Source: Macrostomum lignano
Taxonomy: Eukaryota
Reading direction: 5' to 3'
Assembly: GCA_002269645.1 (NCBI GenBank)
Contig: NIVC01000247.1
Span: 62,001-126,000, forward strand
Length of the DNA: 64,000 bases
The position numbers and the translations under genes are program-made. This document shows positions 38,138 to 63,303 of this stretch, piece after piece. The number at the start of each line of letters is the position of its first letter. Position 1 is the first letter of the stretch. The notes beneath the pieces were generated by a model. It was not told the origin of the DNA. It made no database searches and worked only from the letters and a program-made list of their open reading frames with translations.

Positions 38138-38675
<538 letters not shown>

Positions 38676-40534: not shown

Positions 40535-41848
40535 ATGCAAACCTTTACGCTACTCTTCAGCATCAGCGCTCTGCTTCTAGCCACCTCACAGCAGGTGGAC
40601 TGCGTGTTCTGTCCGCCAGGATGGCTGTTGACAGCCTCGCGCGGACTGTGCATCGGGACTCCGTCGTTCCAAGCCACTGAAGGCATTCCGGCAGCTGCGG
40701 CCGCTGATTTCTGCGGCAGAGCCGTCAGGCAGGCTGGTCTGGCGAGCACAGCAGCCGACCCGGATGTGCTTCGGTTGGGGCAGAAGCTGGCGAAGGGACG
40801 GCGACTGTGGGTTTCCGGCTGTTCGAAGGCTTCAATCAAACGGAATGTGTAAGTCTGCTGTCTGTCTGGTGGTGTTGTAGATAATAGTCTCGAGCTGCCC
40901 GGGCTCGATTCCAAGTGCAGTCATTAATTTGGGGCTAAATTGGAATCTCGACTTGAGTCTGCTCGTGCATGAAATTAATGGCCTTTCTTTAGCGCCAACC
41001 ATCAAGGCACAGTGAAGTATATACATGTCTAACGATAATATATTCAGGGTCCCTGTACACCTCTGTGAAAGTGTGCCTGTTCTTATGACTGCTAGCTTTG
41101 TGTGCTTGCTCAGGGGAGTCGTTGGAATGAGCAGTAATGAATCTCGCCAGTTGTGTGACAATGTCTCTTAATTAAAGGGTGCACACAGTCCCTGTCTCTA
41201 GCTGAAAGGCTGCTGCCTATTGCTGGGTTTCCCAGTTGAGGCTCATTAGCTTAGGTCTCCACGTGCACGAAAATGGGCCGGGAGCAAATGGGCCGACCCA
41301 CAAGGGTTAATTTCTGCCTAATTTTGCCTGAGTGTAGTGCCTGCATGTAATTTTGACGAACCTTAATTGCCTTTTGGCAGTGCCGAAAGGAGTCAGAGAC
41401 TCGATTAAAAATAACACTGTACAACAGACGAATATATAAACCGTATAACTTTTCTGAATGTTGCAGCGAAAGTCGCCAGTGCTGCGCAGTCAATTTTGAT
41501 GATGGAAGCATCATGCGGACAGCTTGTTCAGAGCTGCTCCTTCCTTTGTGCTCGGCGTCACCCTTGCTGGGTCGGCAGAAGCGCTTCTACTACGATTTCA
41601 GCTACACCAACGACTACTCAATATACTCTACAACAGTGCTTCCATTGACAAGCAGTCCTGATGCAGCAACGATTGTCATTGTGATTTTTGTCACTATATT
41701 ACCGATAGTCCTTTTTGCGCTGCTTGTCTGGTGCTGCATGCGCTGCTGCTGCAAGAGTAAGACGGTTGTAAAGCCAGCGCCACCGCCAGAGCCTGAACCT
41801 GAAGTTGAGGTGATCGGCATTGTGACTGTTCACACTGTGCGATATTAA
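40535..41848 (+). CDS. C-type-lectin-like type-I membrane protein, copy A
   Basis: Exon 1 40535-40848 (signal peptide, CPPGW, LC, AADFC, LAS, LWVSGC). Phase-2 intron. Exon 2 41467-41848 (QCCAVNFDDGSIMRTACSELLLPLC, RQKR, Y/S/T stub, TM helix, WCCMRCCCK, Pro-rich tail). Confidence 0.82.
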
Positions 41849-42748
41849 CGACTGCTGGCTGCTGTACATGTACGAGTCGTACGTACTTCTATTTTTCGGT
41901 ATACACTAGTATTCAGTGGATGTCTTTGCAACAAATAATCTTTAGCGACACTGCAATTGCGAGCTTAAAGGACTTAATTAATCACATTGCGCGTTTTTTT
42001 CTATGTAAGATACGTTCAAGAATATTAGATTTATGTAAATATCTTTAATCAGCGTTACTTTCATACTCTAACAAGTTTTATTCAAATTTACTTTGTTACA
42101 GCTTTTTGAAGGAACAAATGCTTTTTTAACAAAAATTCCAACAATATACAGCTCGTACAAGGTAAACGTGTTGTTTAGTATTTTAGTTCGATATTATTTA
42201 CTCATGTTCACGAGTAGAGCAACAGACATGCATTTTGCAAGCATGCAGGCGATTAAATTTAAAATATACTCGTAATATTATTATTTTAACGAATGCACCT
42301 CTATTCTGTTTTCCAAAGAAATATTTGTAAGCATGCACATTATAGCTCGCACTAAAAAGACATAAAAGTTGCAAATGCGGGAGAAAAGTGTTTTAATTTT
42401 TTAGCTCGTATTGTACGTAGCAAGTGGTCTATTCATGGCATGCGCTGCTTCATTTGAATGCTCTCTAAGCTGACTCAAAGCTCCCATTTCATTCAATGAG
42501 CACGAAAACCGTCGATTCAATTTTTGGCCATCCTGCAAGTATCACGGATATATGATGCGGATTTCAGTCGCTTATAAAGTTTGCTTTGTCTGTGAGCACG
42601 AAGAAAATCAATTCAATTTTCGGGGGATCCTGCAAGTTTTCACGGATTTAAGATGCGGATTTCACAAGCTTATAAAGTCTACTTTGTTTTCATGAAAGCC
42701 AACAAAAAACACGTCTCGCTCGAGTCTCACTGCTAAAGCTAGTAGACG

Positions 42749-43661
42749 ATGCAAACCTTTACGCTACTCTTCAGCATCAGCGTTTTGCTTCTAGCCACCT
42801 CACAGCAGGTGGACTGCGTGTTCTGTCCGCCAGGATGGCTGTTGACAGCCTCGCGCGGACTGTGCATCGGGACTCCGTCGTTCCAAGCCACTGAAGGCAT
42901 TCCGGCAGCTGCGGCCGCTGATTCCTGAGGCAGAGCCGTCAGGCAGGCTGGTCTGGCGAGCTCAGCAGCCGACCCGGATGTGCTTCAGTTGGGGCAGAAG
43001 CTGGCGAAGGGACGGCGACTGGGGGTTTCCGGCTGTTCGAATGCTTTGATCGAATGGAATGAGTAAGGCTGCTCTGTATAATGCTGTTATTGAGAGTTCA
43101 GCATTTAGCATGACTGCAGACTCTCACGACTATCAGGGGTTTGATTCCCGTGTGAGCGCTAGCTGGCTCATAGGTTTAAGTCTCGTTGCACGAAAATGGG
43201 ACCCCCGGGGCTTGTCATACTATCAATGGCCATGAGGGCCAACCAACCCAGGCACAGAGCGGGTCAGGGTTTCTGTGGAACGCTTCTGAGGGTCACAAGA
43301 GTGAACCTTATGCGTACCTTTATTGATTAAGTAAACGAGTTTAAGCCGTATAACTTCTGTGAAATGTTGAATTGTTGCATGCAGAGAAAGTCGTCAGTGC
43401 TGTGCAGTCAATCCCGCTGATGGAAACATCGTGCCAACAGCTTGTTCAGAGATGCTTCTTCCTTTGTGCTTCGCCCCTCCCTTGCTAAGTCGGCAGAAGC
43501 GCCAACAGTCAGGCAGTTCTTTTGTAGGAACGGTTATGGGTGGGATTTTCGGAGTTATTGCAACGATAATTGTTTTTGCACTTCTGATCTGGTGCTGCTG
43601 CAAAGTCTGCACAAGTAATATCGTTATTCCAGAGCCTCAGTCTGACATTGAGGACTTCTAG
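42749..43661 (+). pseudogene. C-type-lectin-like membrane protein, copy B (nonsense in exon 1)
   Basis: TGC>TGA at 42926-42928 destroys the conserved AADFC cysteine. Exon 2 (~43385-43661) keeps RQKR, the TM helix and WCCC, but the Tyr stub is deleted. Confidence 0.85.
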
Positions 43662-46341
43662 CTAGACTGTACATGTATACGTGTATTGATGCACTCAAAC
43701 TTTATAGATATCCGTAAAACAAAACCCTTTGGCGCCACTACAAAGTGATAGGACGCGCACTGTGTGCACATACTAGTAATTACCTTTTTTTGCATATACG
43801 TGTAAATTAGATTTTGTAAATCTATCAACTATTATAATAGTGAATTTTGAACTCTGTACAAGGACAACTAAAGCAGCCTATATTATACAGGAAGCGACAC
43901 TCGCGTTTCATGGGGAGAAAGTTTTGAAGGCCACTTTAGATAAATATTTAGCTGGATACTACAGCTTTGCAATTAACATTTATTTATACTGTTTACAGAT
44001 TCTACACGGCTAATCGAACCCTTAAAAGAGCTAGAAATGGAGTTGGCACGTAATTAATTTTAGATAGTAAGGCTTACCTTGTTGAAAAAATGGGTGGCGT
44101 TAAGAAAAGTGAAATAAAAAAAATAAGTTAAGCCAGAGCCGCGAATGCTTTTTTCTTAAATGAGAATAAGTTTCGACGTTCTCTGCGAATAAAAGATATT
44201 TCCACGTGCATCCTGTAATTGCCTCGCAATATTATTATCAAATCGGTTCTAAAATAAGCGAGTGAGTTATATTATAAATAAACATCTTGTTTCGCATGAG
44301 TCAAATGCGTCGTATTATTCACTTGTACGCGTTAAACCTCAAATATATCGCTAACCTGGCCAGTTTGGGCCCCGCGATTTGATTTTCTCGGCTTCTCGCT
44401 CAGCTTAACCCGCGGCCTTCAGACTTTACACATCCATTCAAAAGTGACATTGTTTGGAAAAGTGCATGGCCTTCAAAGCATTTTCCATAGATTTCAAGTT
44501 TTGCGTCCTTCTATTTTAGTAGTCCTTGAATCTGTAACGAATTTAATTCAAATTTCTCCTATTACTCGTACAGTTTTTGAAAGTTCCGATTAGTAAACTT
44601 CAACGCGTCTGCTTTTGAACAAACTGTATCTTAGTGCTTAAACAACTTTATTGTGCGTTGGTTTGCCCTTTTTATTCATTTTTCAGAGCAAAAAGTATAT
44701 TATTTTTGAAATACTGCAAATTACTAGCCTCGTATCATGAAACAAAAGTATAAACGCTTCTACATATGTATTTTGTCACCAAGGAAAATTGATGAAAATT
44801 CACACTCGATGCAGTGTAAATGTTTTGAAACTGCACCTCGAGCCGGTTTCGGATTTTGTAAATGAATGGAGAGCGGCTGATGAGAGAGGAAGTATGAAGC
44901 GAGCAATTTTGGCGTTTACGAAACAATTAGTTCTGTGCTCTGTAGAGGTTTTAAAATTTACGGCTATTAATGTGAAAATAATGAACGTACACTGTACATA
45001 TTACTTACTAATGACTGTAGCGCAAGCGCGCCGATTAGGCCGCGACGCCCAAGGTAATGAGGAAGCCACGCAAGTATTCATGCAAATACTTAGCCCCCGA
45101 GAAGGTGTTTTTAGTCGTGCCTTTTTAAATCAAGGCCAGAATTAGGTGACGTGATCCTCCGCGGTCTGATCCTCTCCTACATACATGTACATGTATGCCG
45201 CAGGGAAAGACAGATGGGAGGGATCAAACCACTGCACTTTGCGACAAGAAGATGTCTCTGGAAGAATCTAATGCCAGTTTAGACCCAACAAGGACTAAAT
45301 ACGAGCGTATATAGTGGCCGGGTCTTTGTTTTGGACCTTTTATATCTCCCTAGCTAAGGTCGCGGTTCTGTTACATGTAAAGTGAGATCAGATACATGTA
45401 TTCGAGACTTTCCTGTTCAGCTAGGTTTGGGCATTGTAGAACGGGTCTGCCTGACCTACATATACATCTACTGCCCAGCGATACTTGGCGAGAGAGTCCG
45501 CGAGATCATTGCCAACTAAGCTAGGATAATACATGACAGGTACATGTACATGTAGATATCATACATGTATACTGTACAGACCGTGTCCAGACGATTCTAA
45601 TTGTGTTAAGGACTGAAATACACTCAACTCAATACATTGATATTAGTAGGCGCTGTGATACAGTTGCAGCGGGATTTTTTCATTGGTTAAGGCCAATAGA
45701 TAAGTGACTCGGCTATATATCAGAGTAATTAAATTCCTGATTTTCGCTTGGGGCAGCTGGCCGAATACGTGTACTATAATACTGTACTAAGAGCACGCTA
45801 CTGCACAATTTCGCAAACTTCGCGGTTTGGAAAACCGAGATGTTCTCGACGAGTTGCACAAATTCTTGAAAGAGCATTATACCCTTCACAGTGACAGTTC
45901 TTGACAGTGACAGTGACAGTGAAGTGACAGTGACAGCCGTCACAGCGAAGCAGCTACAGTGTATGGATGCCTTATTGCTAGCTGCACCGGACGAAAGAAG
46001 GAAATTGAAAGGAAGAAAGAAAATAAATGGAACGAAGGAATTAGAACGAAAGGAAAGAAATGAATTTGAAAGGGACAATGTTTTGTTATTATAGTCAATC
46101 AACACACCAGCTTCTTATATATATTGTACTTGAACACAAACGATAAAAATTATCGTAAAGTAAAATCACATTAGATACTCGTAAAAAATGTTAATTAATC
46201 AGCCTGGCACTCGAAAAGAGGATTGTCTTCTTATCATCTGCAAGAATATATCACAAGATTAAAACCACACTTAAAATTCGACAGAAGTCTCGAATTTGGA
46301 TTTAAGGATTTAAATTTTTTCGGTTTTAGCTAAAGGGCTAA

Positions 46342-46460
46342 TTCCGCCCCCGGAATCCGCCCCTAGAATCCACCCTCAGAATCCGCCCCGGAATCCGCCT
46401 CCGGAATCCGCCCCCGGAATCGGCTCCCCGGAATCCGCCCCCAAAATCTGCTCCCAAACC
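46342..46460. repeat. Degenerate ~13-bp GC-rich repeat (CCGGAATCCGCCC)
   Basis: About 8 imperfect units. Confidence 0.75.
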
Positions 46461-47081
46461 GTAAGTTTACAAAATAATATCGTCTGTTAATGAAAAATTT
46501 TTATCCGTGATTCAGAGTGATAAAAATATTATTTTAAACTTCATTCACTTACACGAGAATTCAAGAGATTCTTTTTCTTGACGCTTGGCGAAAGCTTCCA
46601 GTCCAGAGCAGTGAAGGGGTTGCAGGTTTTGTCAGACGAACGAACTGTGAGCTATGGGTTTAATAACTCATGGGTGGCTTTGCAGTGTCTGCGAGCCTTG
46701 TCTAATATTCCTTCGGTGTATCCTAACCCTTGCAATCTAATGGCGGAATCTTTTGAATGCGTGCTCCATCTATTCGTGGAAATAAATGAAGCTTGCACTA
46801 AAGTCATAAAATTTGCATATTCGTTGCGATGTGGTTCTATCGTAAGCAAACGAGCAGGCGCTGCTTCGGTTGAATGCTCACTGGACTATTCAAAGCTCTC
46901 ATTTAATTCAATGCGCACAAAAACAGTCAATTCAATTCTCCTGCCAGCCAAGTTTTCGCGGATATAGAGTATATAATAAGATGCGAAAATCTCACAAACT
47001 CATAAGGTTTGCTTTGTGAGTCATAAAAAACAGACAAATTTCCACGTCTCATTCGAGTCTCACTGCTAAAGCTAGTAGACG

Positions 47082-48026
47082 ATGCAAACTTTTACGCTGG
47101 TCTTCGGCATCAGCGCTTTGCTTCTAGCCGCCTCACAGCAGGTGGACTGCGTATTCTGTCCGCCAGGATGGCTGTTAACAACCTCACGCGGACTGTGCAT
47201 CGGGACTCCGTCATTTCAAGCCGCTGCAGGCATCCGGGCAGCTGCGGCCGCTGATTCCTGCGGCAGAGCCGTCAGGCAGGCTGGTCTGGCGAGCACAGCA
47301 GCCGACCCGGATGTGCTTCGGTTGGGGCAGAAACTGGCGAAGGGACGGCGGCTGTGGGTTTCCGGCTGTGCGAAGGCTTCGATCGAACGGAATGAGTAAG
47401 GCTGCTGTCTAGTTCTGTTTTCGGGGATTCAGCATTTAGCACGGGCCAACCACCCCAGGCACAGCGGGTCAGGGTCCCGCTGACGAAAGCTCCCTAGAAA
47501 CTGGATTAAGATTGCTATATAGTTTATCCATCGGTTTCTACAGGAAGCTTCGACAATAAACTCTCAAGAGAGTGAACCTTATTTACATGTAACTTTATTG
47601 ATCGAATATACGAATCTAAACCGTACAACTTCTCCACAATGTCGCAATTGTTGCAGTGAAAGTCGTCAGTGCTGTGCAGTCAATCCCGTTGATGGAAAAA
47701 TCACGCCAACAGCTTGTTCAAAGCTGCTCCCTCCTCTGTGCTCCGCGCCTCCCTTGCTGAGTCGGCAGAAGCGCCAATACTCTTACTACTACTACTACTT
47801 ATACTCCACAACAGTGCCTTCATCATACTACTCAAGCAGTTCTTATGTAGGAACGGTTCTAGGTGTGATTTTTGGAGTTATAGTACCGATAGTGATTGTT
47901 GTGCTTGTGATCTGGTGCTGCTGCAATTGCTGCAAAAGCAAGACGGTTGTCGTAAATCCAGTGCCTCAGCCCCAGCCTATGGGTATGGGGGTGAACATTG
48001 TGAATGTTCAGAATATGCAGCATTGA
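47082..48026 (+). CDS. C-type-lectin-like type-I membrane protein, copy C
   Basis: Exon 1 47082-47395 and exon 2 47657-48026; RQKR-QYSYYYYYLYSTT...-TM-WCCCNCCK. Confidence 0.85.
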
Positions 48027-50631
48027 GGACTGCTATAGCTGCACTCAAACTCTATATGGATGTCTCTACAACAAAAAACATTTAGCACCACTGCAAAGTG
48101 AGAGAACCTAGCTACTGTACATGTAACTACCGTATTTCATTTTATTCCATATACATGTAAGTCATATAGCTTTGATAAATATATATCATGCTTTATTTCA
48201 AACTCTGTAACGAATTTTATACGAATTTCTTATATTACAGTTTTTAAAAGTTCCAACTAGTAAACTGCAACGTGTCTGTTTTTTAAATAACTGTATTTTA
48301 GTGCTTAAACAACTTTATTTTGCGTTAGTTCGCCATTTTTACTCATGTTTTAGAGCAAAAAATAGATTGCATACTGCATTATCATGAAATAAAAAAAATA
48401 AACGCTTCTTTTTTTTACCAAAGAAAAATTGGTAGAATTTCACACTCGATACAGTGTAAATGTTTTGAAGCCACCGCCGGTAAGTGAATGTAGCGGTTGA
48501 TCCGTGAAAGTATGAAGTGCGCAATTTTGGCGTTCACGAAACAAAGTTCTGTGCTCTGTAGAACTTTTAAAACTTACTGCTTTAAATGTGAAATAATGGA
48601 CTTTACATACTACTTTACTATAATGACAGTAGCGCAAGCTCCGCGATTAGGCCGCAATCAGGCCCCGCGCAACCGTAAGGCAAAAAAGAAGCCTACATGC
48701 AAAGATTAACCTTAGGGGCGCGCCCCGCCCCCACCATGCAGTAGTCAACAGGAATTCGCTGAGGAGACACCGGCGGCCGGTATCTCGAAAGAAAGTGCGA
48801 AGCTCACGGCCGTTGTCCGGGTTGGTTAGCTCGTCCATCCGCTGGTTAATGTGGCCGAGGTGTTTTGAGCCGTGCCTTTTTGAATCAAGGACAGAAGGTC
48901 CGCGGTCTTCTCTCTCCTATGCCACAGGGAAAGACAGGTGGGAGAGGGATCAAACCGCTTTGCAACAAAATATCTTTGGAAGGAAGATGGCAATTAAGAC
49001 CCAATGACCACTAGAAGTTACTGGTAACTTCTAAATGTATATATGTATAGTGTTTCTTGTTAGGACCTTGCAAATCTGCCTGAGATCGGTTCTGTTACAT
49101 GTATGTGAGAACAACAGATATTCAGAGACTTTCCTGTTCAGGTATGGGCATCGCAGAGCGGGTCTGCATGCTTGGCCTTAGCTGTATTCGGTGCAACACT
49201 GGCCTGTTCCACTGGAGCTGCATGGTGTTGCTGGTGGTGCCACCTGTAGCTGCTGATATGCGGTTGTTTGCAACCTAGGCATGGGTAGCCTCATCAGACT
49301 CATGGTTGACTCAAATGGTTGACTCAAAAAGCCGCATATGGGTTGCTGCCCGGCAGCTCCTTGGCGAGAGAATCCGCGAGATCGCTGTCCAAGGATATAT
49401 TACTACTGTGACGTCATGGTGTCCTAATCCCGTTAAGGACTGAAAGAGATTCGTACACACTCAATACATCGCATGGTAGCATTGAGATACAGTTGCAGTG
49501 GAAATCTTCGTTGGTTAAGACCTTGATAGCGGCTTGAATATCAGTGTAAAAATGAATATTGAAATTCATTATGTTCGCCCAGCTGGAAAGCAGGTGCTGG
49601 AGCACACTGCTTAATGGCGCGAATTTCGGCTTGGAAAACCGGGGGTGTTAATTCTTACCGAGTTTCAGAATTTCTTGAAAGAGCATCATGCCCTCGTGGA
49701 ATATGACGATACCCGTTCCAGCGTTGCCGTAGCACCAACAGCCGTCGTCAGTTTGAAGCAGTGGATACCCTGGCTGTGCTAATTCACACCAAAGAAAGGG
49801 AGGAAAGAAAGAAAGAAAGCAATAAAGAGAACGAAGGAAGAAAGAAAGGAATGCGAAAGGGGCAATGTTTTGTTTTAACCAATCACACCCCAACAGCGAA
49901 AGAGACGAACAGCAGGCAGGCAAAGGCTTATGGCCCGAAGCAGCGCGAGAGGTGGGGAAAGCGACCCCGTAGTAACGATAAGTTTATTTTGCAAGCAAAC
50001 GAGATTAAAAGAAAAAGAATGTGCTTAAAAAAAATTTGAGCTGCAAAGCCAAAGCGAGCGACGGGGCACAGAGGGCGGCGTGCAAATAAATAAGCGGGTG
50101 AGCAAACCCCCCCCCACCCCACGGGGGTAGAGAGGACGGAGCACAAAGGCGGCACAATGCACAGCGCGAGGGGTGGATGGCTAACACCCATTTCACTCCA
50201 GGCTCACAAAAGAGCCTAAGAGAAATGGAGGCATTAACCAATCACACCCCAACAGCGAAAGAGACGAACAGCAGGCAGGCAAAGGCTTATGGCCCGAAGC
50301 AGCGCGAGAGGTGGGGAAAGCGACTCCAACCCCGAAAAAAGGAGGAGAAAAGGAGAGAACAGGAAGATAAAAACAAGGAGGCAGCAAAAGTAAGCGAAGC
50401 CAGGCCACGAACGCCAAGGTAAAACGCCAAAGGGTCAATAAAACGAGCGAGTAAGCAGTCAAGAGGCCAGGCAGGCAGCGACCTGCCGAGCTGCTGCCCG
50501 ACGGCGGGCAAACGACGCCTCATCAGAGAAATACCGAAAGACGCAGTCTGAACGCCAGTCGCCCATGCAACGGATGTCGGCGATTGAGAGGCCTGACTGA
50601 AAGGCAGCGCTGGCCCCGCCTCTACGCAGAC

Positions 50632-51667
50632 CACAGAACATAGACAGAATGCCCGATCGGCTGTCGCGGGATGTTTAGAAATTAATATGCAAACAAACTA
50701 CTTTTGTGGTGAAGCGGAGCAGTAGTTATGAAAATTCGATATGCATATATATATATTTATAATATATGTAGACTCTGCGTATGATTCTATAAACTTATAT
50801 ATTGCTTCAGAATTTAAAATTAACAGGTTTGGCAGTGCCCAAATAGGAATAAAACCGTAGACGTTGTCCCCAATCATTTATTTGAAACAAAAAACATATT
50901 TGAAACATTTTCCATCAAAACACTGCACATCGTCCTCAGTGCGACCTTCTCTCGGCCTTCTCTCCTTCGCAAGTGGAGAAACTCTTACTCTCGGACGCGA
51001 GCGTCGGTAAGGTTCTGCTATTTCTTTGTACAGCTGGAGCATCGGGTAAGCCGTGGGCATCAGTCTGACCCCAGGCTCATGTCTCTGGTCAGGACACACG
51101 TACATGCTGTCGGGAAAATGGTGGCTGCACACGACAGCGTTCTTCCACCTCGCTTCGTTTTTCTTGCCCAAGAGGTCTGCTCGGAAGATGCGCCGAGCCC
51201 AATCTTCACACCTACAGTAGTTAGGTTTCAGTGAATGACTATGGGGCAATAGCAGGAAAGTCACGCATGTACATGAACATACCTTTCTCGGTTTGCTGGG
51301 AATCGATGAAATCTCGTTTGTGCAGGACATTTGTTTGCGTAATTCTGGCAGCCATAAGCAGCGCATTGCCTTCTTGATGCTGTCATGTTACAGTTGTCTC
51401 TGTTTAATGCCTTCGTTGCTACCAATCACTGCCTTATTCATGTCAGTAGCAGCAGCCGCTGCCACAGAATATACTGTATATTCTGTGGCAGCGGCTGCTG
51501 CTACTCGCAGTCTCAGTCGTCTATGGCAGAACCTTTCCAAGCCGCATACGCGTAAGTATAAGTGGCTACTATCTTTCTTCACCACAAAAGTAGCTAAATA
51601 TGCAAATACTTTTTGTAACAGATTTTTCTGCGAGAGGGCTGATCGGCCATTCTGTCTATATTCTGTG
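50632..51667 (-). mobile_element. 1036-bp non-autonomous P-element-like transposon
   Basis: ~29-bp TIRs (CACAGAACATAGACAGAATGCCCGATCGG / CACAGAATATAGACAGAATGGCCGATCAG) and a perfect 8-bp TSD ACGCAGAC (50624-50631, 51668-51675). It encodes a THAP domain. Confidence 0.88.
50878..51386 (-). CDS. THAP zinc-finger-only protein (truncated transposase N-terminus)
   Basis: Exon 51386-51283, 71-nt intron, exon 51211-50878: MTASRRQCAAYGC...RFHRFP...CEDW...VCSHHF...LMPTAYP, a complete C2CH THAP signature. Confidence 0.85.
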
Positions 51668-52434
51668 ACGCAGACTGTGACCCGAGAAGCCGCACTCGCC
51701 AAAGCCGCACATAGACATGCCCCGCTTTAGGAGCCGGATGAACATAACGGCAGACAAGAGAGTCCGGCCGCGGCTGCCTAGGACAGAAAACAGGGGCTGC
51801 TGCGGTCCGTAGATTTGATTCTCGCGCAGATGAGTTGCTAGTGCGGAAGCGGGACAGATAAGCAGGCATTCAGAGGCCTGCGGCAGAAATAATTCCAGTT
51901 GCCGCTCCTTGAATTGGTTTGTCTTTGACCTGTTGAGCACCAGCCGCAGACCACCGGGGCACGCTGATAGGCAGCTCCGGGGAAGAGCGTCCGCAGCGGT
52001 GGATGGTAAGAGCTCGCCGAGCCTAAGGACTCCCCACCAGGCCACCAGCAATGCTGCCTGGAAGGCGGCCAGCAGACGGGGCGGCAGCGAATGACGTAGC
52101 TCGGTGGAGCTGCAAAGCAGGCGGAGGTGGCTGGGCTTCAGCGGCGTCGCACGCCGAGGCTGCCGGCTCAGAAGACGCCGAGCCCCGCGACACACGAGAG
52201 CCAGGCGAGCGCTGCCCTTGGTCGGGTCTGGTGACGCGGAAGCCCTATGTAGGTAAGACACCGCGCTGAGGCTTGACTGCACACTGGAGTAGGACGCCGG
52301 TCCACGTTGTAACAGGAACGAGACAAATTGGCAGACATCAGACTCGGAGGCGGCGGTCGCGGGAACTCGACGCTGCCGGCAGAATTCGTTCCAGACTTGT
52401 AAGCGGCTCGCATAGGACTTCCTGGAACTAGGCG

Positions 52435-54102
52435 CTAGTGACAGGCGGCACAGAGCGGACACAGACACGGTGGAGCGGAGCGGAGCGCGGCTGCGACCTG
52501 CGAATGAAGAGCGGTGCGAGACACGGCAGAAATGGTGTGGGAAGCAAATTCGAAAGGACAAATGCATAAAGAGCCGTAAAGACGGCAGCAAAAATTAATG
52601 AGCTCTCTGCTCGAGCCCCCCATTCTAGAAGCGGAGTCGCTCAGCAGCTGCATCTGGCCAGGAAGGTGGAACGCCTAGAGCTGAATTCCCGACGTGAGGC
52701 ACACGAGAGCAACGGTCTGATAGATGCGAATGAGCAGAGGATGCCGACAGGACAGCTTATTGACCATGCCGACGGCAGCAGTGCTGTCCGAGTAAATCAC
52801 CACGCGGCTGTTCCTAAGCTGCTCGCGGAAGCGCAGGATGGTAAGCAGCGGAGCCAGCGCCTCCTTGAGGTTGATGTGAAGGTCGCAGAACTTGCTCTCA
52901 AAGTCCTTCTCCCAGCTGAAGTACGTCCAGTCATTGAATTCGCTGCCAAAGACGATGCCAGCAGCACCCTCGCAACTGCTATCAGATTCGATGGCCACAA
53001 GTTGACGAAAACGGGGGCGAATGACCGTCGGCGGCAGAGAACTCACGACGCGCAGCCACCAGAGGAAGAGGTTGCGAAGCTCAGATGGCAGCCGGGTGTC
53101 CATTCTGCAGCTGAGGATGTCGAAGAGCGGGCGCAGGAAAGGACGCAAAAGCCTGTTGATCTGGCTGAGCCAGCACAACTTTCCGGCCAGTTTTTCGAGC
53201 TGCTTCAGTTTAACAACGTCACGTGACAGGCAATCGTTCAGCAGTTTCCGAATGTCGTCTTTCTTGTTGCTTGGAAGTGACAGGGTGCCGTTCACAGTGT
53301 CAACCAGCACGTCGAGAAACACAACGTGTTGAGCTGGAGCCACGGTCTTCTGCCTGTTGATGTCGAAGCCTAAGTTCTGCAGCAGATCAACCAGATAATT
53401 GAAGGCCTCCTGAGCCGCTTCTTCAGTATCAGCGGCTACTGCCCAGTCGTCCAAGTAGTTGACGGTAGCTGTGAAGCCAATGCTGAACATGTGGCGCTTG
53501 ATGCAGGCCGATAAGCGATGGAAAATCTCACATGACGCTCGAGCACCAAAGGGCAACCGAGTGTCAACGAGCACCGAGTCATCGCTGTCGGCAGAGAACC
53601 GCCAGCTGAGGCCCGTGAGCACCTGGTCGTCAGGGTGAATACCGACGGAACGATAGGCCTGCTTGAGGTCCATTTTGCCGATAAACGAGTTTGGGCGAAG
53701 ATAGCGGGTCAGGTCTTGGACAGAGGCGAAGCGCAGCCCCTTTTCCTGCTCATAGCTGTCGTTGACGGAGGACCCCGAAGGTCTAGAAAGGTCATGAATG
53801 ACCCGGACACTGCCGTCAGATTTTGGAATCGCCCCGATGGCGTTCACCATGACAGGGCCATTGGCGAGCTGCAAGCGGCCGAGACGGAGCTCCTCGGCGA
53901 GCTGTTCACCAACCTGCTTGGCTTGGTCCAAGGCCGATCGGTAGTTGGCGGAGCGGGCAAGAAAAGGCGGCGATCTATTGATGAGCCGAAAGCCGTAGCT
54001 AAGGCCGCTGCGAAGAAAATCTTCGTCTTGGTCACCCAGAAGCAGCGGCTCCCAGACGACAGAGCGCGGCGCGGTGGAGAGAGCAGGGTGCGAGCAGGGC
54101 AA
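52435..54102 (-). CDS. Ngaro reverse transcriptase / RNase H ORF with an in-frame TAG at 52675-52677
   Basis: RVIHDLS, KMDLKQAYRSV, RLPFGARAS, YLDD. RNase H motifs IESDSS, HINLKEA, YSDST. The reading frame resumes after the stop as AFHLPGQMQLLSDSASR. Confidence 0.9.
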
Positions 54103-54172
54103 TGAGCAGATGGAGGCAAGATAAAAGGTGACGGCGAACGGGGGTTAAAAGCAGGGCGGCTATAAAAAAGAT

Positions 54173-55231
54173 CTAGTTTTTTGCTTCCTCCACAGCGTCG
54201 CCGCCGACGCTGGCCGGACGGTGCTGGTGTGCGGGGTGCAGCCGGCCGCAGTCGCGCAGCTTGCAGACGTGACGGTATCTACAGGAGGACCGCTGGCAGC
54301 CGGCAGGGGAGTTGTAGCTTAGGCAGATGGGAGCTTGCGACTGGTTGGATGCTGGTCTGCTTAGGGTGACTTTTAAGTTTCTTGGTGCGTTAAGGTGTCG
54401 GTGGTACAGCTGTGGAGGCTCGCAGCCCCATCGATGCGAATCCGAGTCGGCGATCAACTTTCTGTAATCCTCATCGAATTCCCACACGACACTTGGGCTG
54501 TAGTTAGCGTCTAAGAGCTCGCCGATCTTCTGTGAGTACTCCAGATAGCCTTTTAGTTCGTCAACATTGACAGATCTATCCTCATTAATGTGAATCAGCG
54601 ACCCATCATCAACTAGTCGAAGCAAAATCTTAGAGTTCCCTGCAATCCACTGGCCGACAGAGATTTTCCCCAAGCTGGGTGGCTGCTTCTTAAAGACCAG
54701 GTTCCCGTTCTCCATGCAGGCTGTGAGGCTCTCATTAGGTTGATTTGAACTGGGCTTGACAAAATCGCGAATCAGATAAGCCCTGCTAGGCTTTTTGTCA
54801 CACTGGCTTCTGCCGGGATCTGTAAGAGCGCCGCCTAACAAAAACGCCTCATGCAAGCCAGCATTTTCTCCCCGCTCACCTTGTTGTGGAGGTTCCTGAG
54901 ACCGGTGGTTCTGCGACTGATTGAGCTCGCTTTGCAGTTGTGCGCGGCGCCGAGTCAGAGCTTCAATCTCCAGCTGCTCGACCTCCTTCCTCAGAGCCGC
55001 CAGGTCGCTCGCCGCGCTCCCTGAAGCTCCGTGTCCACCCGTCGAATGTCCAGCGTCGATGGTGTCTGAGTTGAGGCTTGCGTCGTGACTTTTTGCTGCA
55101 GCTGGATACTCAGACATAGCACGCAGGTGTCTGTGTAGACGCTCATAGAGTTGTTGTTTACGACCAGCTTGTGAGAGGCCTCGCTGAGCTAGCTCTTGTT
55201 TGAGCTGTTTAGTTGTGCGTGCACTTTCCAT
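54173..55231 (-). CDS. Ngaro gag-like ORF1 with N-terminal SAP-like motif and C-terminal CCCH zinc finger (352 aa)
   Basis: TTKQLKQELAQRGLSQAGRKQQLYERL; a coiled-coil; CLSYNSPAGCQRSSCRYRHVC...CGRLHPAHQH. Confidence 0.82.
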   Translation of the reverse strand: MESARTTKQLKQELAQRGLSQAGRKQQLYERLHRHLRAMSEYPAAAKSHDASLNSDTIDAGHSTGGHGASGSAASDLAALRKEVEQLEIEALTRRRAQLQSELNQSQNHRSQEPPQQGERGENAGLHEAFLLGGALTDPGRSQCDKKPSRAYLIRDFVKPSSNQPNESLTACMENGNLVFKKQPPSLGKISVGQWIAGNSKILLRLVDDGSLIHINEDRSVNVDELKGYLEYSQKIGELLDANYSPSVVWEFDEDYRKLIADSDSHRWGCEPPQLYHRHLNAPRNLKVTLSRPASNQSQAPICLSYNSPAGCQRSSCRYRHVCKLRDCGRLHPAHQHRPASVGGDAVEEAKN

Positions 55232-55878
55232 AATGGTAAAATTTTGAGCTGCAAAGCCAAAGCGAGCGACGGGGCACAGAGGGCGGCGTGCAAATAAATA
55301 AGCGGGTGAGCAAACCCCCCACCCCACGGGGGGTAGAGAGGACGGAGCACAAAGGCGGCACAATGCACAGCGCGAGGGGTGGATGGCTAACACCCATTTC
55401 ACTCCAGGCTCACAAAAGAGCCTAAGAGAAATGGAGGCATTCATAGTTAAACAACAGACCAGATTACAGAATATTACCAGATGTGGACCAGATTGTGGAC
55501 CAGATTGACATAAACCAAAGCAATTTAAAAGAATAATCGTAAAAATAAAATCACATATCATACCAGTAAAAAGGTTTTAATTAATCAGCCTCTATCTCAA
55601 AAAGCCGACTGCCTTCTTATTAACTGGGTAACTGCAAGAGATTACACAAAACCAGACATAAAACTCAAGAGGTCTCAAATTCAAGAATGTAACAATCTCG
55701 GTTTTTACCCAAAAACCTAGTTTAAACAATAATAAGAAACATTTTGAAGGGTTTGTAAAAAATATTCATTAGAAGTGTAAATTACCTTTAATATTGTTTT
55801 AAAGTTTATTCATCTTTATTTAATTGTTATCATTACTTGGTAGGTTAGCTACTTTTTGAATCATTTTTCATGACACTT

Positions 55879-56062: not shown

Positions 56063-56094
56063 GAGGATCGAGGGTCACGAGGGTCAGAGAGCAC

Positions 56095-56540: not shown

Positions 56541-57124
56541 AATACTTCATGTTGATATTTACCTTTATTTATCTACTCTTCATCAAGCGAGCCACTTTAC
56601 CTGAAAAGTATTGTTACTTTTCACTATATCTCTCATTCTACTGATCCAAACATAATTTTGCACAGATTTATAGCGGCAACTCTCTTCTTCATATTAACTT
56701 TAACATCATTTTAAAAATAGACAATGGTTGGTTATTCGTAAGTGAGACTTTAGGATAATAGTCCGGCTCATGAGTGCGCGCACGAATAACCGCATTGTCG
56801 AATTTCAGTGGGGCCATAGACAAAAAGGGCATCGAAAGGAGAGAGGGGTTACCGAGGAGAGAGAGACATAAAGACTGAGGTGGTTTACTGGAGTTTGGGC
56901 CATAGACAACGAAGTTGCAAACAGGCTGGGGGTTAAGAGGGTGGAAAGGAAGGAGATGTGGAGAGAAAGAGGGAATAAAACGTAAATAGCTACATTCGCT
57001 TGGCCATGGAGAACCAGACGTCATATCCGATCAACTGGGGCAATTGGATCTCAAGACTTTCCACATCTCAGAAGGACATGAAGGATAACGAAGACTTTTT
57101 GAACTTCTTGCACTTTCTTGAGAC

Positions 57125-57430
57125 CTGGAATCGGCTGGGCATTCGATGAGCGAGATCATGGCTATCACGGGTCAAAAGTCCGAGAGCACGGTCCGGCGCT
57201 ACCTGGCAGTTAAACGGGACAAGTCCTTGCAACAATGCAGCGATGCAGTGTCGCGTGCGTTGAACATGGGACAAAGCGCCGCGACCCACGGTCAAGTAAC
57301 AATGCCTGCTGACATCAGCATCCAAAGTTCCATCGTGCAAGAAGCAGTGAGCGTGTCTGATGGTCGTCAGATGAACGGTCGGAATATCTTTATTATGAAC
57401 AACTGCACTTTCAACAATTGCAACCTGTAA
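57125..57430 (+). pseudogene. Crypton-like tyrosine recombinase C-terminal fragment
   Basis: AGHSMSEIMAITGQKSESTVRRYL resembles the IMxxTGHKSxxSxxxY motif of Crypton/DUF3504 recombinases; the N-terminal part is missing. Confidence 0.5.
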
Positions 57431-58612
57431 TGGTCTTCGGCACTATGACAATTGCGCCATATTGATACTGCACAATTAACTTTCCATAGCGCTAATCTTT
57501 TGTTGTTGGTGTTTGCTGTTTTGTTCTAAAAATAGGTGTCCATTATTCCGAGTTTGAAATCATTATCCTGAAGTTTAAGTGAAAAAAAAAATAAATGTGC
57601 TCATGGTTTAACCATAGACGATTGCATTATCCTAAAGGCTGATTTTTGACAATGGAAAAAAGTTATGAACTAAAATGTAGCAGGACCTCAAACATAGACT
57701 TACAGTAATTTGACAAGCTAGCGGAAAGTAGCAAAAATACTTTTGATTGAATGAACTCAGACTTCTTTGTTAGGCTGCTGTGACAAAGAGATATCTATAG
57801 AAAAACTTGGAGAAGCATATAGCTTTTAAAGCAACAGAATATTTCAAACTAGGCTTCAGCTTTATTGCTTTTTGTTCCCTCCTTCTGCTGCTGGAAAGCC
57901 ATGCAAATTATGAAGAGGGCTGCGATTAAAATATTAAAAGCGTCACTTCGGTAACAGAGAAGCAGTTCTGTAGATAAAGATGAAAGAAAGGCCGGAAATC
58001 CGCGCTAGACCCAGGGCCTGCTGTCACGGAAACCCAGCCAAAACAGGAGCCGCTGGCGCCCAGAAAATAAAGAACGATGCCCGCAACGTGGCTTACAAAT
58101 CTAAATTTAAGTTAGGACAATAAGCTTTTTTTTAAATACGCTCGTAGATTTCCCAGAATTTCTTTAGTCAGACAGCTACATGCATATACGACTTTTTAAA
58201 ATGCACCAAACGCTTCTCTTGAGCAAATACGTTTAGGGAATAAAATCAGAGATATTCATTCCGCCTCTATTCTGCTTCTCTGCACATACGGAATCGAATT
58301 TTTTAAGTTTTACCAATGTGAAGAGTTGCAGTTTTTGCTTTAAAAAGCTGAACGATTCCAAGCCGTCTAGTGAAACATCGAGCGGAAGTGTCACTATAGT
58401 TTTGAATGCATGTGGCACAAAAGAACAATGTAAAGCAACGGATGCTTGAGTCAAATATGTTGCTTTTGCAGTAGAATAATGAATACTTCAAGGTCTTAAA
58501 TTTTATTTGTCTCAAAACGAGGCATTGACGCGCTAAAACCAGGTCGTTAAAATTCGCTTCAGTCCATGCTCAGCTCACCAAATGAGCCAGTCGGTCACCG
58601 CACCGCTCGAGC

Positions 58613-59348
58613 TCAGCCACGCACGAACAGAGTCCACTCGGGCCCGCTCAGGTGGCCAGGCGGGTACACGAACTCCAGCAGGTGGCAGGCGAGCTCCTGT
58701 CGAGAGAAAACGGCGGCCCGGCAGTCGGCTCTGGCGCTGCACCGGAGCAGGCAGTCCTCGACGGACTGGGCAGCGACAGGCCAGACGGAAGTGGTACCGG
58801 ATGTCACGGGAGGGCTGGACGGCTTCACTACCGTGTAGGTGTTGCGGTCCGAAACTGAAATTGAATGAAAGTGCATAGTCTCATACTTCCATAATGACAG
58901 CCGCTACTGAGCAGTAACAGAAAATTACAAAAGTACCTGAGTAGCTCAGTGAGAACACAGAATTGCAATAGTAACCGCCACATTTTTGCTGTTGGTTTCC
59001 GGAGCAAGCATTGCTGCAGTTGCCTTCGCCTACCAAGCCATGGGATCCGTACGAGTTGCCGCAGTAGCACTCTTTGCCGTGCTGCACACCGAAGTAGGCG
59101 AATTTGCCCGCCGAGCAGATGCCGCTGCACATCTCATGCGACATCTCAGTGCTTAGTGATACTCGAACTTCATTAGCGACATCGAATCCGCCGAGTTTGG
59201 TGAGCCCTCTGAGTCCCTTTAAGTCCCTGAGTGACCCACGGTCTTTATAGCAGCCCAGGTAGGAGAAGCGGGCGAGTCTGCAGGTGACGCAAGTCAGCAG
59301 GAGGGCAGCGCAGAGCAGAACGGGCAGAGCCGCTGCTGGACGGAACAT
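58613..59348 (-). CDS. Secreted WSC + PAN/Apple domain protein, copy 3 (intact)
   Basis: ATG at 59348; WSC exon to 58937, intron 58936-58855, PAN exon 58854-58613. Confidence 0.9.
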
Positions 59349-61385
59349 TTCGCTGCTCGGTGAGAGGCTTGGGGTAAAGGGTAGTTTCTGCAACGCTCCA
59401 GGTTTTAAAAGTGTCGAAACGTTACCGATTTAGATGGCAACGCTGTTTGAGCAATCAGCGCTGTTTTGGAGAAGCGTGTCGCCCTCCATTGGGCAGTTGG
59501 GGATTTCTGATTTCCTACTCAAATAGGTCGTACTTTAAGGGCATTTCAAGCTATCCAAAAAGACAATTAACAGAAATACACAGGGCCTAATTTTCCCAGG
59601 TCCCGCAAACAACGGTGTGGCGAACTATCCGTGCAGGATGAGTCTGGTTTGGCCTCTTACCTTAGCCAGGGATGCTCTCACTGCCTCTATTCGATCAGTG
59701 GGATGATAGTTCAAGCGACCTTGTCTCCTATTTTGCACATTGCAAGGTGCCCTTTGGAAGGTACTCGTGCCGTGGGTGTTAAGGCAGGCCTCCTGGGTCT
59801 TGTCGAGCTGATTCCTTGGCGTAGGAGGTCCTTGTGAGACCATAAACTCGCCTCTAAGGTCCCAGTGTAACTCCGTGCCAATGGAAGCTTTACCAGAGAG
59901 CAGTCTGGTAGCATTCCCCATGGGCCCTTGAATCCTACGGTATTTTTTCTTTGAGGATGCAGCTTGTGGCTCTGTGCATGTGTTCTTCAAGAAGTCACAC
60001 CTTCATTGTCACTTTAATCCAATGGCTTCTATTCGAAGGATGAAGTGGATGACACAGTGCCTCAGGCTTCGGACACAGACTCAAACCAGGTGTCGTGATG
60101 CCAGTGTTGGTCGGTCCGACCCTTATATACATTTAGATTATAATTTAGATATTTCCTCGTCAGGAACGGTGACCCAAAAGCCCGTGGTCCGGAACTCGTG
60201 CCTATCATATCAAGCTGTAGCAGATTGAGACATTTGAGGAACTTCCTATCCTAAGACCTGAATCCCAATACTGAATGTTAAGTAAAGTAAAATATAGTTG
60301 GAATTGCATCACGTGTCCTTTAATTAGAAGTTTTCTGTTACGAGCGTGCTTAGGCAAAAAAACACAGAACAACCCCTGCAGGTTAACTGACTATTTACTG
60401 GCTGCTACAATTTTCTCAAAAGCGGATTTCTCAAAATTGTGATTGTTCGTACGAGCGTATGCTCAAGAAGCCACATTGTCTTATAGTAGTTGAAGTGCTC
60501 GCCAACTGAAATGGCCGATGCTGCTCATTCCAGTGAGTTTTTTCAAAGGTCTCTACCTCCTTTGCCCACAAAGAGGTTTGCCGGCAGCGTAAGCAATCAG
60601 CACAAAAAGTAGTTTATGGGATTGAATAATAGTGTAGTTTGCCACAGACCGTTTTTTGGATGTATTTTGCGCATCATGCGCTCGGTGTAGTGCCTATTAG
60701 TAGCATTTCTAGCATTCAAAAGCAGTGTTTAACTTTCTTTGTAAAAAAATATTAAAACATTTGACTAGCAGACGAGCCTAACAAAAGTATAAATGCTTAA
60801 CAGACAAGATTTTATTTGTAGGGGCCGCAACTACAAAGTGACGTCAGTGTAAGCGATAAATTCAATTTAGACTACTGAGAAATGTAGACAAATAAAAATT
60901 TGAATCGTAAAATGTCTTTTTAAACACAGTGTGGTCCGAAAACATTATAGCCATAAAAGAAACGTTTGGCAATGGCTGAGCGATAAAGGCAAAACACTCC
61001 GTCTGACTTAGCGAGGTTATCCCCCCCTCCAAATTTTAGTGTATCACAGTTGATATCAGCGTTCAAAACTCAGCCTTCAGCGGAGAACGACGTGGTTGCA
61101 GCCGCCACCAGATAAGTCCGCAGGAACCCACACGACCTTCGCACAGGGCGAAGGCCTGCATATCAATCACTCAAAGAGCTGCGCAACCAAGCTGTGAGGC
61201 CCACCAAGACATCAGAGCGACGGATCAAGACTACGAGTCGCTCCCCCCCCCCGGAGCCGTAAATATACCAAAAATATCGTCTGTTATAGAATTAGGCAAT
61301 TGCTGCAGAGTTAGGTTTTTCATTAAATCCAGTTTTAACCAGTCACCGAGTTGTTTTACTCTTTCAATTCTATCCACCTATAAAC

Positions 61386-61470
61386 CAGGGGTCGGAAAAC
61401 TCCGGCACGAGCCTCTCTATCCGGCCCTCCGGTCCGCTGAAACTTCACTATGGCAATCCGGCCCTCTCAA
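61386..61470 (+). mobile_element. hAT-type MITE terminal fragment
   Basis: CAGGGGTCGGAAAACTCCGGC...CCGGCCCTC end motif. Confidence 0.55.
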
Positions 61471-61692
61471 TTCTTTTTAAAGGGTAAACCCGCTTGGCGA
61501 AAACTTCCAGTCTATAGAGCACAAAACTCACAAAGCTGCAGTTTTTGTCAGACAAAAGAACTGAAAAGAACTGTGAGCTATGGGTTTAATAACTCATGGT
61601 GGCTGTGCAGTATCTGCGAGCCTTGTCTCATATCCGTCGGTGTATCCTAACCCTAAGCTATGGCGGAGTCTTTTGAATGCGTGCTCCATCTA

Positions 61693-61955
61693 TTCCGATG
61701 GAGAAGAGAGCCTGCAACTCTTCTCTCCGATGGAGAAGAAGGATGGATTCTCTTCTCTCTCTCTGCAACTCTCCGATGGAGAAGAGAGCCTGCAACTCTT
61801 CTCTCCGATGGAGAAGAAGGATGGATTCTCTTCTCTCTCTCTGCAACTCTCCGATGGAGAAGAGAGCCTGCAACTCTTCTCTCCGATGGAGAAGAAGGAT
61901 GGATTCTCTTCTCTCTCTCTCTGCAACTCTCCGATGGAGAAGAGAGCCTGCAACT
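61693..61955. repeat. 78-bp tandem repeat x3.4 upstream of lectin copy D
   Basis: Unit starts at 61695, 61773, 61851 and 61931; absent from the paralogous promoters of copies A and C. Confidence 0.93.
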
Positions 61956-62246
61956 AAAAAGGTCGCACTAAAAGCCATAAAAAATTGCATATTCTATCGT
62001 AAGCAAACGATCCTATTCATGAACAGGCGCTGCTTCGGTTGAATGCTCTCTATAACTAAGTTGACTATTCAAAGCTCTCATTTAATTCAATGCGCACGAA
62101 AACAGTGAATTCAATTGTCTGCCAGCCAAGTTTGCGCGGATACATAGATGCAATATCTCTCAAGCTTATAAATTAGGATTGCTTCGTGTGCCATGAAAGA
62201 CACAAATTTCCACGTCTCGTTTGAGTCTCACTGCTAAAGCTAGACG

Positions 62247-63303
62247 ATGCAAACTTTTACGTTGGTCTTCGGCATCAGCGCTTTGCTTCTAGCCACCTCA
62301 CAGCAGGTGGACTGCGTATTCTGTCCGCCAGGATGGCTGTTGACAACCTCGCGCGGACTGTGCATCGGGACTCCGTCATTTCAAGCCGCTGCAGGCATCC
62401 GGGCAGCTACGGCCGCTGATTTCTGCGGCAGAGCCGTCAGGCAGGCTGGTCTGGCGAGCTCAGCAGCCGACCCGGATGTGCTTCGGTTGGGGCAGAAGCT
62501 GGCGAAGGGACGGCGACTGTGGGTTTCCGGCTGTTCGAAAGCTTCGATCGAACGGAATGAGTAAGGCTGCTGTCTAGTTCTGTTTTTCGGGGGTTCAGCA
62601 TTTAGCACGACTGCCGACTCTCACGGCTCATCAGGGGTTCGATTCCCTTGTAAGCGCTAGCCGGCCTCATAAGTTAAGGTCTCCTGCAATAAAATGCGAT
62701 CCCGGGGCTTGTCATGCAATCAATGACCATGAGGGCCAACCATCCAGGCACAGAGCGGGTCAGGGTTGCTGCACACAGTGCCGAAAGTCCCCCTAGACAC
62801 TTGATTACTATATATTTTGTCCATCGGTTTCTGTGGAAAGCTTCCGAGGGTCACCTTTATTGATCAATTAAACGAATCCAAACCGTATAACCTCTCCGAA
62901 ATGTCGCAATTGTTGCAGTGAAAGTCATCAGTGCTGCGCAATCAATCCCGTTGATGGAAAAATCACGCCAACAGCTTGTTCGGAGCTGCTCCCTCCTCTG
63001 TGCTCCGCGCCTCCCTTGCTAAGCCGGCAGAAGCGCCAATACTCTTACTACTACTACTTATACTCCACCACAACGCGTTCACCTTACTACGACTCGTACT
63101 ATTACTCAAGCGGCGCTTATGTAGGATTGGTTATCGGTGTGATTTTGGCAATTTTAATACCAATAGTGATTGTTGTGCTTGTGATCTGGTGCTGCTGCAA
63201 GTGCTGCAAAAGCAAGACGGTTGTCGTAAATCCAGTGCGTCAGCCTCAGCCTATGGGTATGGGAGTGAACATTGTGAATGTTCAGAATATGCAGCACCAC
63301 TGA
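62247..63303 (+). CDS. C-type-lectin-like type-I membrane protein, copy D
   Basis: Exon 1 62247-62560 and exon 2 62919-63303; RQKR-QYSYYYYLYSTTTRSPYYDSYYYSSG-TM-WCCCKCCK. Confidence 0.85.

Follow-up and report, generated by a model that had tools for sequence, protein, structure and literature searches.

We analysed a window of 64,000 nucleotides (nt) from the flatworm Macrostomum lignano (positions 62,001 to 126,000 of scaffold NIVC01000247.1, assembly GCA_002269645.1, matched at 100% identity), which carries on its + strand a tandem array of four paralogous two-exon units. The units start at 40535, 42749, 47082 and 62247, as located from the list of open reading frames (ORFs) and a repeat scan, and tblastn revealed no further copies elsewhere in the window; none lie within 9.3 kb downstream either. 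They belong to a real, lineage-restricted and uncharacterised family whose products are small type I membrane proteins with a head domain of orphan status. The reading that we favour, at somewhat short of an even chance, is that this tandem family, so far seen only in M. lignano, encodes pro-proteins of about 230 amino acids (aa) that would be processed by a proprotein convertase at a conserved RQKR site, the head being the functional module and the membrane anchor a generic one. The parts of the array are as follows.

40335..40534, + strand: conserved upstream region and 5' untranslated region of copy 1, in which a TATA-like box, CTTATAAA, lies about 75 nt 5' of the ATG
42549-42748, 46882-47081 and 62047-62246, + strand: upstream blocks of copies 2, 3 and 4 equivalent to that of copy 1, from the alignment
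40535..40848, + strand: copy 1 exon 1, encoding the signal peptide and the first 84 residues of the mature ectodomain
40849..41466, + strand: copy 1 intron, 618 nt, GTAAGT...TTGCAG
41467..41848, + strand: copy 1 exon 2, encoding the remainder of the ectodomain, RQKR (41573-41584), a stub (FYYDFSYTNDYSIYSTT...), a transmembrane (TM) helix, CCMRCCC, a Pro/Glu-rich tail and the stop
42749..43062, + strand: copy 2 exon 1, pseudogenised: the conserved Cys60 codon reads TGA (42926-42928), with W92>G in addition
43385..43661, + strand: copy 2 exon 2, with the acceptor GCATGCAG followed by A, encoding the C-terminus of the ectodomain, RQKR (43491-43502), the 7-residue stub QQSGSSF, TM helix, CCCKVC and a short tail
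47082..47395, + strand: copy 3 exon 1
47657..48026, + strand: copy 3 exon 2, encoding RQKR (47763-47774), a Tyr-rich stub, TM helix, CCCNCC and tail
62247..62560, + strand: copy 4 exon 1 (BOX15_Mlig010311g1)
62919..63303, + strand: copy 4 exon 2, encoding RQKR (63025-63036), the stub QYSYYYYLYSTTTRSPYYDSYYYSSGAY, TM helix, CCCKCC, tail and stop

Exon 1 measures 314 nt in all four copies and contributes its last 2 nt to codon 105, so that the introns (618, 322, 261 and 358 nt in copies 1-4) lie in phase 2, each with a GTAAG donor and a CAG acceptor. The spliced copies 1, 3 and 4 are open over 231, 227 and 232 aa. About 200 nt upstream of each ATG are conserved, with 75% mean column identity across the four upstream regions, and include the TATA-like box and a near-invariant leader, CACGTCTC..GAGTCTCACTGCTAAAGCTAG. 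A sequence-only reading of this DNA had proposed that two apparently unrelated ORFs in each copy are joined in phase 2 as exons of one gene, and the deposited records bear this out. Splicing of copy 4 yields exactly the amino acid sequence of the RNA-seq-derived protein PAA87122.1 (P0002; BOX15_Mlig010311g1) and of UniProt A0A1I8JDN0. The GenBank annotation of M. lignano was built from StringTie/TACO genome-guided and de novo transcriptomes, not ab initio (PMC5730564), and the junction between exon 1 and exon 2 thus has RNA support because the copy 4 product matches a transcriptome-derived model. The same protein appears in a second gene set made independently, and transcript-based models of the family are present at three loci.

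Two homeologous loci were examined beside the window: L001 with a gene of the copy 4 type, and L003 with genes of the copy 2, 3 and 4 types in the same order as in the window. In L003, the copy 2-type gene is intact and the copy 3-type protein is identical to that of the window. Between copy 4 and its L001 homeologue, the coding sequence diverges by 1.6% and the intron by 5.2%, and in the ectodomain the ratio of non-synonymous to synonymous divergence (dN/dS) lies at 0.27-0.42 when copies 1, 3 and 4 are compared. The family genes are real and constrained, under moderate purifying selection, and are transcribed in spliced form. One GenBank gene in L003, BOX15_Mlig000673g3 (L003 10001-19626), runs over 9.6 kb from the copy 3-type unit to the end of the copy 4-type unit. 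A chimeric gene made of both units was ruled out, as the copy 4-type unit alone encodes the protein P0247 exactly; transcription of several genes as one unit, which has been described in M. lignano, probably accounts for the long range.

The public records cover the array unevenly. Family proteins are already deposited in GenBank and UniProt as uncharacterised hypothetical proteins, and the spliced copy 3 protein as query retrieves Macrostomum lignano proteins only. Copies 1 and 3 are absent from the GenBank core gene set and are unannotated or mis-modelled in public records. In the UniProt entry A0A1I8GL48 (P0003, 'Secreted protein'), copy 3 is spliced to an in-frame acceptor inside exon 2 (AG at 47839-47840, AAGCAG followed by T), which removes the final third of the ectodomain together with RQKR and the Tyr-rich stub; this form may be an artefact of prediction or a true isoform, which would then bypass the cleavage site.

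The encoded proteins share a common layout. A hydrophobic N-terminal signal (residues 1-20) precedes an ectodomain of about 120 aa (residues 21-140) with nine Cys, and no N-glycosylation sequons were found in the family ectodomain. RQKR follows as residues 141-144, in a Pro-containing linker 11 residues past the last ectodomain Cys and about 30 residues before the TM helix. The tetrapeptide matches the furin/proprotein-convertase motif R-X-K/R-R within a predicted extracellular segment, where it would presumably be accessible, and its invariance, claimed from the window, extends to all seven gene copies examined. Downstream lies a low-complexity stub of 7 to 29 residues that is rich in Tyr, Ser and Thr in copy types 1, 3 and 4, where Tyr accounts for 5/29, 10/24 and 12/28 residues. 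The type 2 stub has just 7 residues, QQSGSSF or QESGSSF, and is Tyr-free even in the intact L003 homeologue. The chain then crosses the membrane once, through a 22-residue hydrophobic helix (KD19 maximum 3.4-3.6); AlphaFold2 models a confident helix at residues 170-200 only. On the cytoplasmic side follow a juxtamembrane W-CC(C)xCC(C)-KSK cluster, with its Cys followed by basic residues, and a tail of 20-30 residues with P/Q or P/E runs. A TM helix, a CCxCC cluster and a short Pro-rich tail had been proposed, correctly for copies 1, 3 and 4. The architecture described for every copy does not extend to copy 2, with its in-frame TGA, W>G replacement and 7-residue Tyr-free stub.

Evidence for our reading comes from the distribution of conservation along these proteins. 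Between copies 1 and 4, the most divergent paralogues, 102/120 ectodomain residues and 4/4 residues of RQKR are identical, followed by 6/31 in the stub, 7/22 in the TM helix and 16/39 in the Cys cluster and tail. Identity thus falls exactly at RQKR, from 85% before it to about 20% after it, and the residues directly after RQKR differ between paralogues (QYSYYYY, FYYDFSY or QQSGSSF). A processed two-module precursor with a constrained head fits this pattern because conservation drops exactly after the putative cleavage site. As judged from the paralogues, the anchor keeps its generic properties (a hydrophobic helix, the W-CC cluster and basic residues), and its sequence and stub length drift.

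The precursor might enter the secretory pathway, where the ectodomain would fold with four disulfides and one spare Cys, and a furin/kexin-type convertase would then cut after RQKR144 in the Pro-containing linker. Cleavage would free an ectodomain of about 13.5 kDa or leave it held non-covalently, and release should be the outcome because the stub has no extracellular Cys after RQKR. The freed ectodomain would be the specific, selected module, a soluble binding protein and possibly a stripped-down C-type-lectin-like fold unable to bind sugar through Ca2+. The Tyr/Ser/Thr stub, the TM helix and the probably S-acylated Cys cluster would serve together as a generic, fast-evolving anchor or sorting device and not as a signalling tethered ligand. 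Judged only by composition, the cluster may be S-acylated and the stub O-glycosylated or cross-linked.

Several points weigh against the processed-precursor reading. An R-x-K/R-R motif arises by chance in 5-6.5% of composition-matched protein shuffles, so that its presence by itself exceeds chance only slightly. The RQKR codons are almost identical between copies, and the conservation of the site is therefore not independent evidence, because near-identical codons also fit recent common ancestry or gene conversion. Furin-like convertases are assumed for M. lignano from general knowledge of flatworms. The family gene IDs did not occur in the M. lignano papers searched, and no expression pattern emerged from these. 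The AlphaFold2 models have a mean predicted local distance difference test (pLDDT) score of 40.3 for the full length and 38.5 for the ectodomain with alignments of 3-4 sequences; these values below 41 arise because only near-identical paralogues were available for alignment.

The strongest alternative, unlikely but a serious contender, takes CD302, layilin or chondrolectin as its model: the protein would be a lectin-like type I surface receptor that escapes cleavage and keeps its ectodomain on the membrane, with the Tyr/Ser/Thr segment as an O-glycosylated stalk and RQKR incidental or buried. Its layout and size match those generally known for the simplest type I receptors with a C-type lectin-like domain (CTLD), and the chance rate of about 5% for an RQKR-type motif is compatible with an incidental site. 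The sharp conservation break exactly at RQKR, a 'stalk' of just 7 residues in the type 2 paralogue and tails with no recognisable signalling or PY motifs argue against it. The remaining evidence on this alternative concerns the fold of the ectodomain: the colinear Cys and the profile score of the C-terminal third, given below, speak for it, and the missing Lectin_C match speaks against it. The sequence-only reading had called the ectodomain a divergent CTLD, which is an interpretation; no sequence, profile or structure tool recognised it as one.

Pfam Lectin_C (PF00059) gave no match at E<=10 with whole proteins or ectodomain fragments, although in nearby ORFs of the genome Pfam readily picks up domains of the WSC, PAN, caspase, THAP, ankyrin and Mab-21 types, and phmmer against all PDB sequences gave no match at E<=10. 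We also used CTLD profiles built from real CD209, MBP, REG, CD69 and layilin sequences. Scored with the CD209 profile alongside shuffled versions of itself, the ectodomain takes ranks 91-259 of 1003, and a broad hidden Markov model of 46 CTLD sequences gives P ~0.035-0.046. All of the CTLD profile signal comes from the C-terminal third, C..DG...C....C (P ~0.01-0.02), and the N-terminal half has P ~0.1. The hhalign comparison produced a colinear alignment of 110 columns in which the CTLD cysteines C0, C0' and C1-C4 coincide, with a probability of 0.3% and P=0.22, which is not significant. The spacing of 14 residues between C2 and C3 and 8 between C3 and C4 compares with 13 and 8 in DC-SIGN, and the distance from 'WIGL' to C2 is about 20 residues short of that in CTLDs, leaving no long-loop region.

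PROSITE PS00615, with the pattern C-[LIVMFYATG]-x(5,12)-[WL]-x-[DNSR]-{C}-{LI}-C-x(5,6)-[FYWLIVSTA]-[LIVMSTA]-C, was not matched when compared by hand: Ile stands at [WL], Pro stands at [DNSR] in copies 3 and 4, and Pro occupies the penultimate hydrophobic position. The Ca2+/carbohydrate motifs EPN, QPD and WND are missing from every copy, just as had been proposed. The low-confidence AlphaFold2 models follow the order beta-beta-alpha-alpha-beta-beta(-beta), which is compatible with a CTLD fold; when these models were compared with the PDB by Foldseek, no match reached E<=0.001, and the weak ones included no CTLD. The CPPGW...C hairpin at the N-terminus of the ectodomain is not diagnostic of CTLDs, because the 2-cysteine-adaptor hairpins of an unrelated protein look alike. 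The CTLD assignment is without statistical or structural backing, and the Cys spacing and motifs align by eye only. A compact CTLD-like fold from which the long loop has been deleted is a reasonable lead and not a finding, and we lean slightly further away from it than towards it. A more elaborate proposal seems to us quite unlikely: the ectodomain would be an animal CTLD of a compact type not seen before, reduced to the beta0 hairpin and the core by loss of the long loop, and a convertase would release it from a palmitoylated Tyr-rich anchor. It would found a new Macrostomum-specific class of shed lectin-like ligands or of molecules that pattern surfaces, whose head and anchor have separate functions.

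The processed-precursor reading places the function in the head. Conversely, the stub might be the business end, such that a Cys-rich pro-domain or chaperone would be removed and expose an anchored Tyr-rich peptide to be cross-linked, through dityrosine or 3,4-dihydroxyphenylalanine (DOPA), or O-glycosylated. The extreme Tyr content right after RQKR in types 3 and 4 would suit this role, and Tyr-rich proteins are generally known to serve tanning and adhesion in flatworms. We consider it improbable, as the stub is the least conserved part and is Tyr-free in type 2, which is intact in L003, and the supposed pro-domain is under the strongest constraint.

Cleavage has also been suggested to follow a tethered-ligand logic, in which the protein would be a self-activating receptor, or a Shisa/CYYR1-like adaptor, whose new N-terminus (as pyroglutamate) signals in cis. 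A dibasic site near the membrane and Gln at P1' in copy types 2, 3 and 4 are in keeping with such a ligand, and the small, Cys-rich, Pro-containing single-pass layout is loosely reminiscent of Shisa/CYYR1 adaptors. However, there is a single TM helix and no seven-transmembrane or other receptor body to activate, and the new N-terminus varies (Q-Y-S-Y, F-Y-Y-D or Q-Q-S-G). A tethered agonist fits badly because its sequence should be conserved, and no segment is less conserved than the stub, in which copies 1 and 4 share 6/31 residues. The adaptor resemblance fails as well: the Shisa, CYYR1 and BRI3 Pfam profiles gave no match at E<=10, PPxY/LPxY (PY) motifs are absent from all tails, and the Cys cluster is cytoplasmic. 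Neither form of the idea was upheld, and we judge it very improbable. Decaying, non-functional duplicated ORFs or an annotation artefact are the least probable explanation: copy 2 is broken, copies 1 and 3 lie outside the GenBank core gene set, satellites and retroelements abound in the region and Logan and ENA hold no transcript-derived family copies on record, but transcript-based models exist at three loci, two independent annotations give the same protein, dN/dS is below 1, coding sequence is more conserved than the intron, promoter-like blocks are conserved and the type 2 copy is intact in L003.

Copy 2 is a pseudogene in this window. An in-frame TGA replaces a conserved Cys codon (TGC>TGA), W>G alters the otherwise invariant LWVSG, and exon 1 shows a non-synonymous excess over copy 1 (dN/dS ~3). 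We ruled out a reading of this TGA as selenocysteine (Cys>Sec), because the W>G replacement and the non-synonymous excess accompany the stop and the L003 homeologue has TGC at the site; an Rfam scan of the window, which bears on the same question, gave no match at the gathering threshold. The ancestry of copy 2 is mosaic. Its exon 1 (42749-43062) resembles that of copy 1 (40535-40848) at a synonymous divergence (dS) of 0.015, and the ectodomain-coding part of its exon 2 (43385-43502) is nearer to copy 3 (47657-47774), with dS of 0.15 versus 0.39 to copy 1. Because the two exons thus resemble different paralogues, the pattern indicates gene conversion or unequal exchange (crossing-over) within the array.

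The array has also been altered by insertion. Copies 3 and 4 are 15.2 kb apart in the window versus 8.5 kb in L003, because a DIRS-like retroelement (50030-55561, - strand) is inserted between them and is absent from L003. Its parts, and an ORF that lies beside or within it, are these.

52675-54102, - strand: reverse transcriptase ORF (RVT_1)
51656-52591, - strand: tyrosine-recombinase-like ORF (Phage_int_SAM_1)
54173-55561, - strand: SAP-domain ORF
50030-50235 and 55238-55441: repeated ends of the element
50878-51366, - strand: THAP-domain ORF beside or within the retroelement (Pfam THAP, E=1.4e-5)

A 78-nt repeat in three units lies immediately upstream of copy 4. Elsewhere in the window, a second repeated family encodes secreted WSC-domain proteins at 22571-23242 (+), 31682-32122 (+) and 58881-59393 (-), the first with a PAN domain too. 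These copies lie in repeats of about 0.8 kb that are 84-86% identical and are present also in L001-L003, and the one near copy 4 is absent from the GenBank gene set. Two caspase (Peptidase_C14) gene copies appear as split ORFs at 3477-3932 (-) and 14347-15197 (-). Adjacent large ORFs at 34840-37798 (-), one with at least six ankyrin repeats (36269-37798) and the other with a Mab-21 C-terminal (HhH/H2TH-like) domain (34840-36288), may form one ankyrin-Mab21 gene. Satellite arrays occupy 392-1087, 38032-38716, 39062-39963, 23772-25037, 33042-34647 and 61694-61927; they include 8-nt CTGTCTGT-type microsatellites at 392-1087 and 38032-38716, a tandem array in which a 43-nt unit recurs about 20 times and two long arrays with repetitive ORFs in all frames.

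The family profile was compared with 1.84 billion protein cluster representatives and gave two matches at E<=1e-10, both of them the family itself; cluster look-ups added two M. lignano members. Three weak matches at E<=0.001, to a bacterial Ig-repeat autotransporter, a 2C_adapt-kinase protein and a TM-repeat protein, were set aside as unrelated. In the databases searched, which hold no other Macrostomum genomes or transcriptomes, these comparisons place the family in M. lignano only. The claim that the combination is not a described family accordingly stands as to the absence of a Pfam match and of homologues outside M. lignano, with the correction that its proteins had already been deposited as hypothetical or under the name 'Brain protein I3'. 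This automatic UniProt name (A0A1I8JDN0, A0A1I8GMK5 and A0A1I8GKU9) is a UniRef label only and appears to be a misnomer, given the lack of a BRI3 profile match. TMEM52 reached 20.3 bits against a gathering cut-off of 26.4, over the TM helix and Cys cluster of copy 1 only; this match and those to Prominin and a plant CR-domain reflect TM and Cys composition and all lie below the gathering scores.

The significance of the family is modest, because flatworm genomes commonly carry orphan families of secreted and membrane proteins, and we see no connection with a long-standing open question. If our reading is correct, the family would be a compact example of how lineage-restricted families are assembled, with a constrained disulfide domain joined via a convertase site to a freely evolving anchor; later amplification would have multiplied the whole, both in tandem and between homeologous chromosomes, in this neopolyploid flatworm. 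Should structural work confirm a CTLD fold, the ectodomain would be a very divergent addition, devoid of a sugar site, to the CTLD-like folds. A practical consequence is the correction of the misleading name 'Brain protein I3'.

Among known systems, the minimal type I CTLD receptors and the convertase-processed single-pass precursors come nearest to the family in layout. With the type I CTLD proteins CD302/DCL-1, layilin and chondrolectin it shares the succession of signal peptide, small disulfide-rich domain, spacer, TM helix and short tail within about 230 aa. By eye and in hhalign, the Cys of CPPGW...C, A..C, C..DG...C and ....C follow the CTLD order, and the family segments G-LAS and LWVSG fall at the positions of G.LASI and WIGL. 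Unlike these proteins, the family has no significant CTLD similarity, no EPN, QPD or WND motif, no long loop and extra Cys, nine in total; CD302, layilin and chondrolectin are not known to carry a dibasic site, Tyr-rich stub or cytoplasmic Cys cluster. Shisa-like proteins, CYYR1 and TMEM52 are likewise small single-pass proteins with Cys clusters and Tyr- or Pro-rich low-complexity segments. Apart from the missing Shisa and CYYR1 profile matches and PY motif, the difference lies in topology: the family Cys cluster is intracellular, after the TM helix, and the Cys-rich domain of Shisa-like proteins is extracellular.

The one match outside the family with a sequence logic concerns the N-terminal disulfide hairpin (residues 23-50, C-P-P-G-W-x7-G-x-C-I-x-x-P-S, for example at 62313-62396). 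It is 34-40% identical to the repeat units C-[DEP]-PGW...SG.CIK..GP of P0005, a giant-virus-like kinase protein with 2C_adapt, with E=2.8e-4 in the library search and E=7e-5 in the pairwise comparison, scores that the repeats inflate. The likeness is confined to a short hairpin, the family has no Pfam 2C_adapt match and the context is entirely different; it is probably convergent. Finally, convertase-processed single-pass precursors, such as those with Notch S1-type cleavage and shed pro-ligands, differ from this family in that its cleavage is predicted, it has no homology to such substrates and no disulfide or known interface joins its halves. What the two have in common is the R-X-K-R linker between a folded domain and a membrane anchor, with the boundary of conservation at the site itself.

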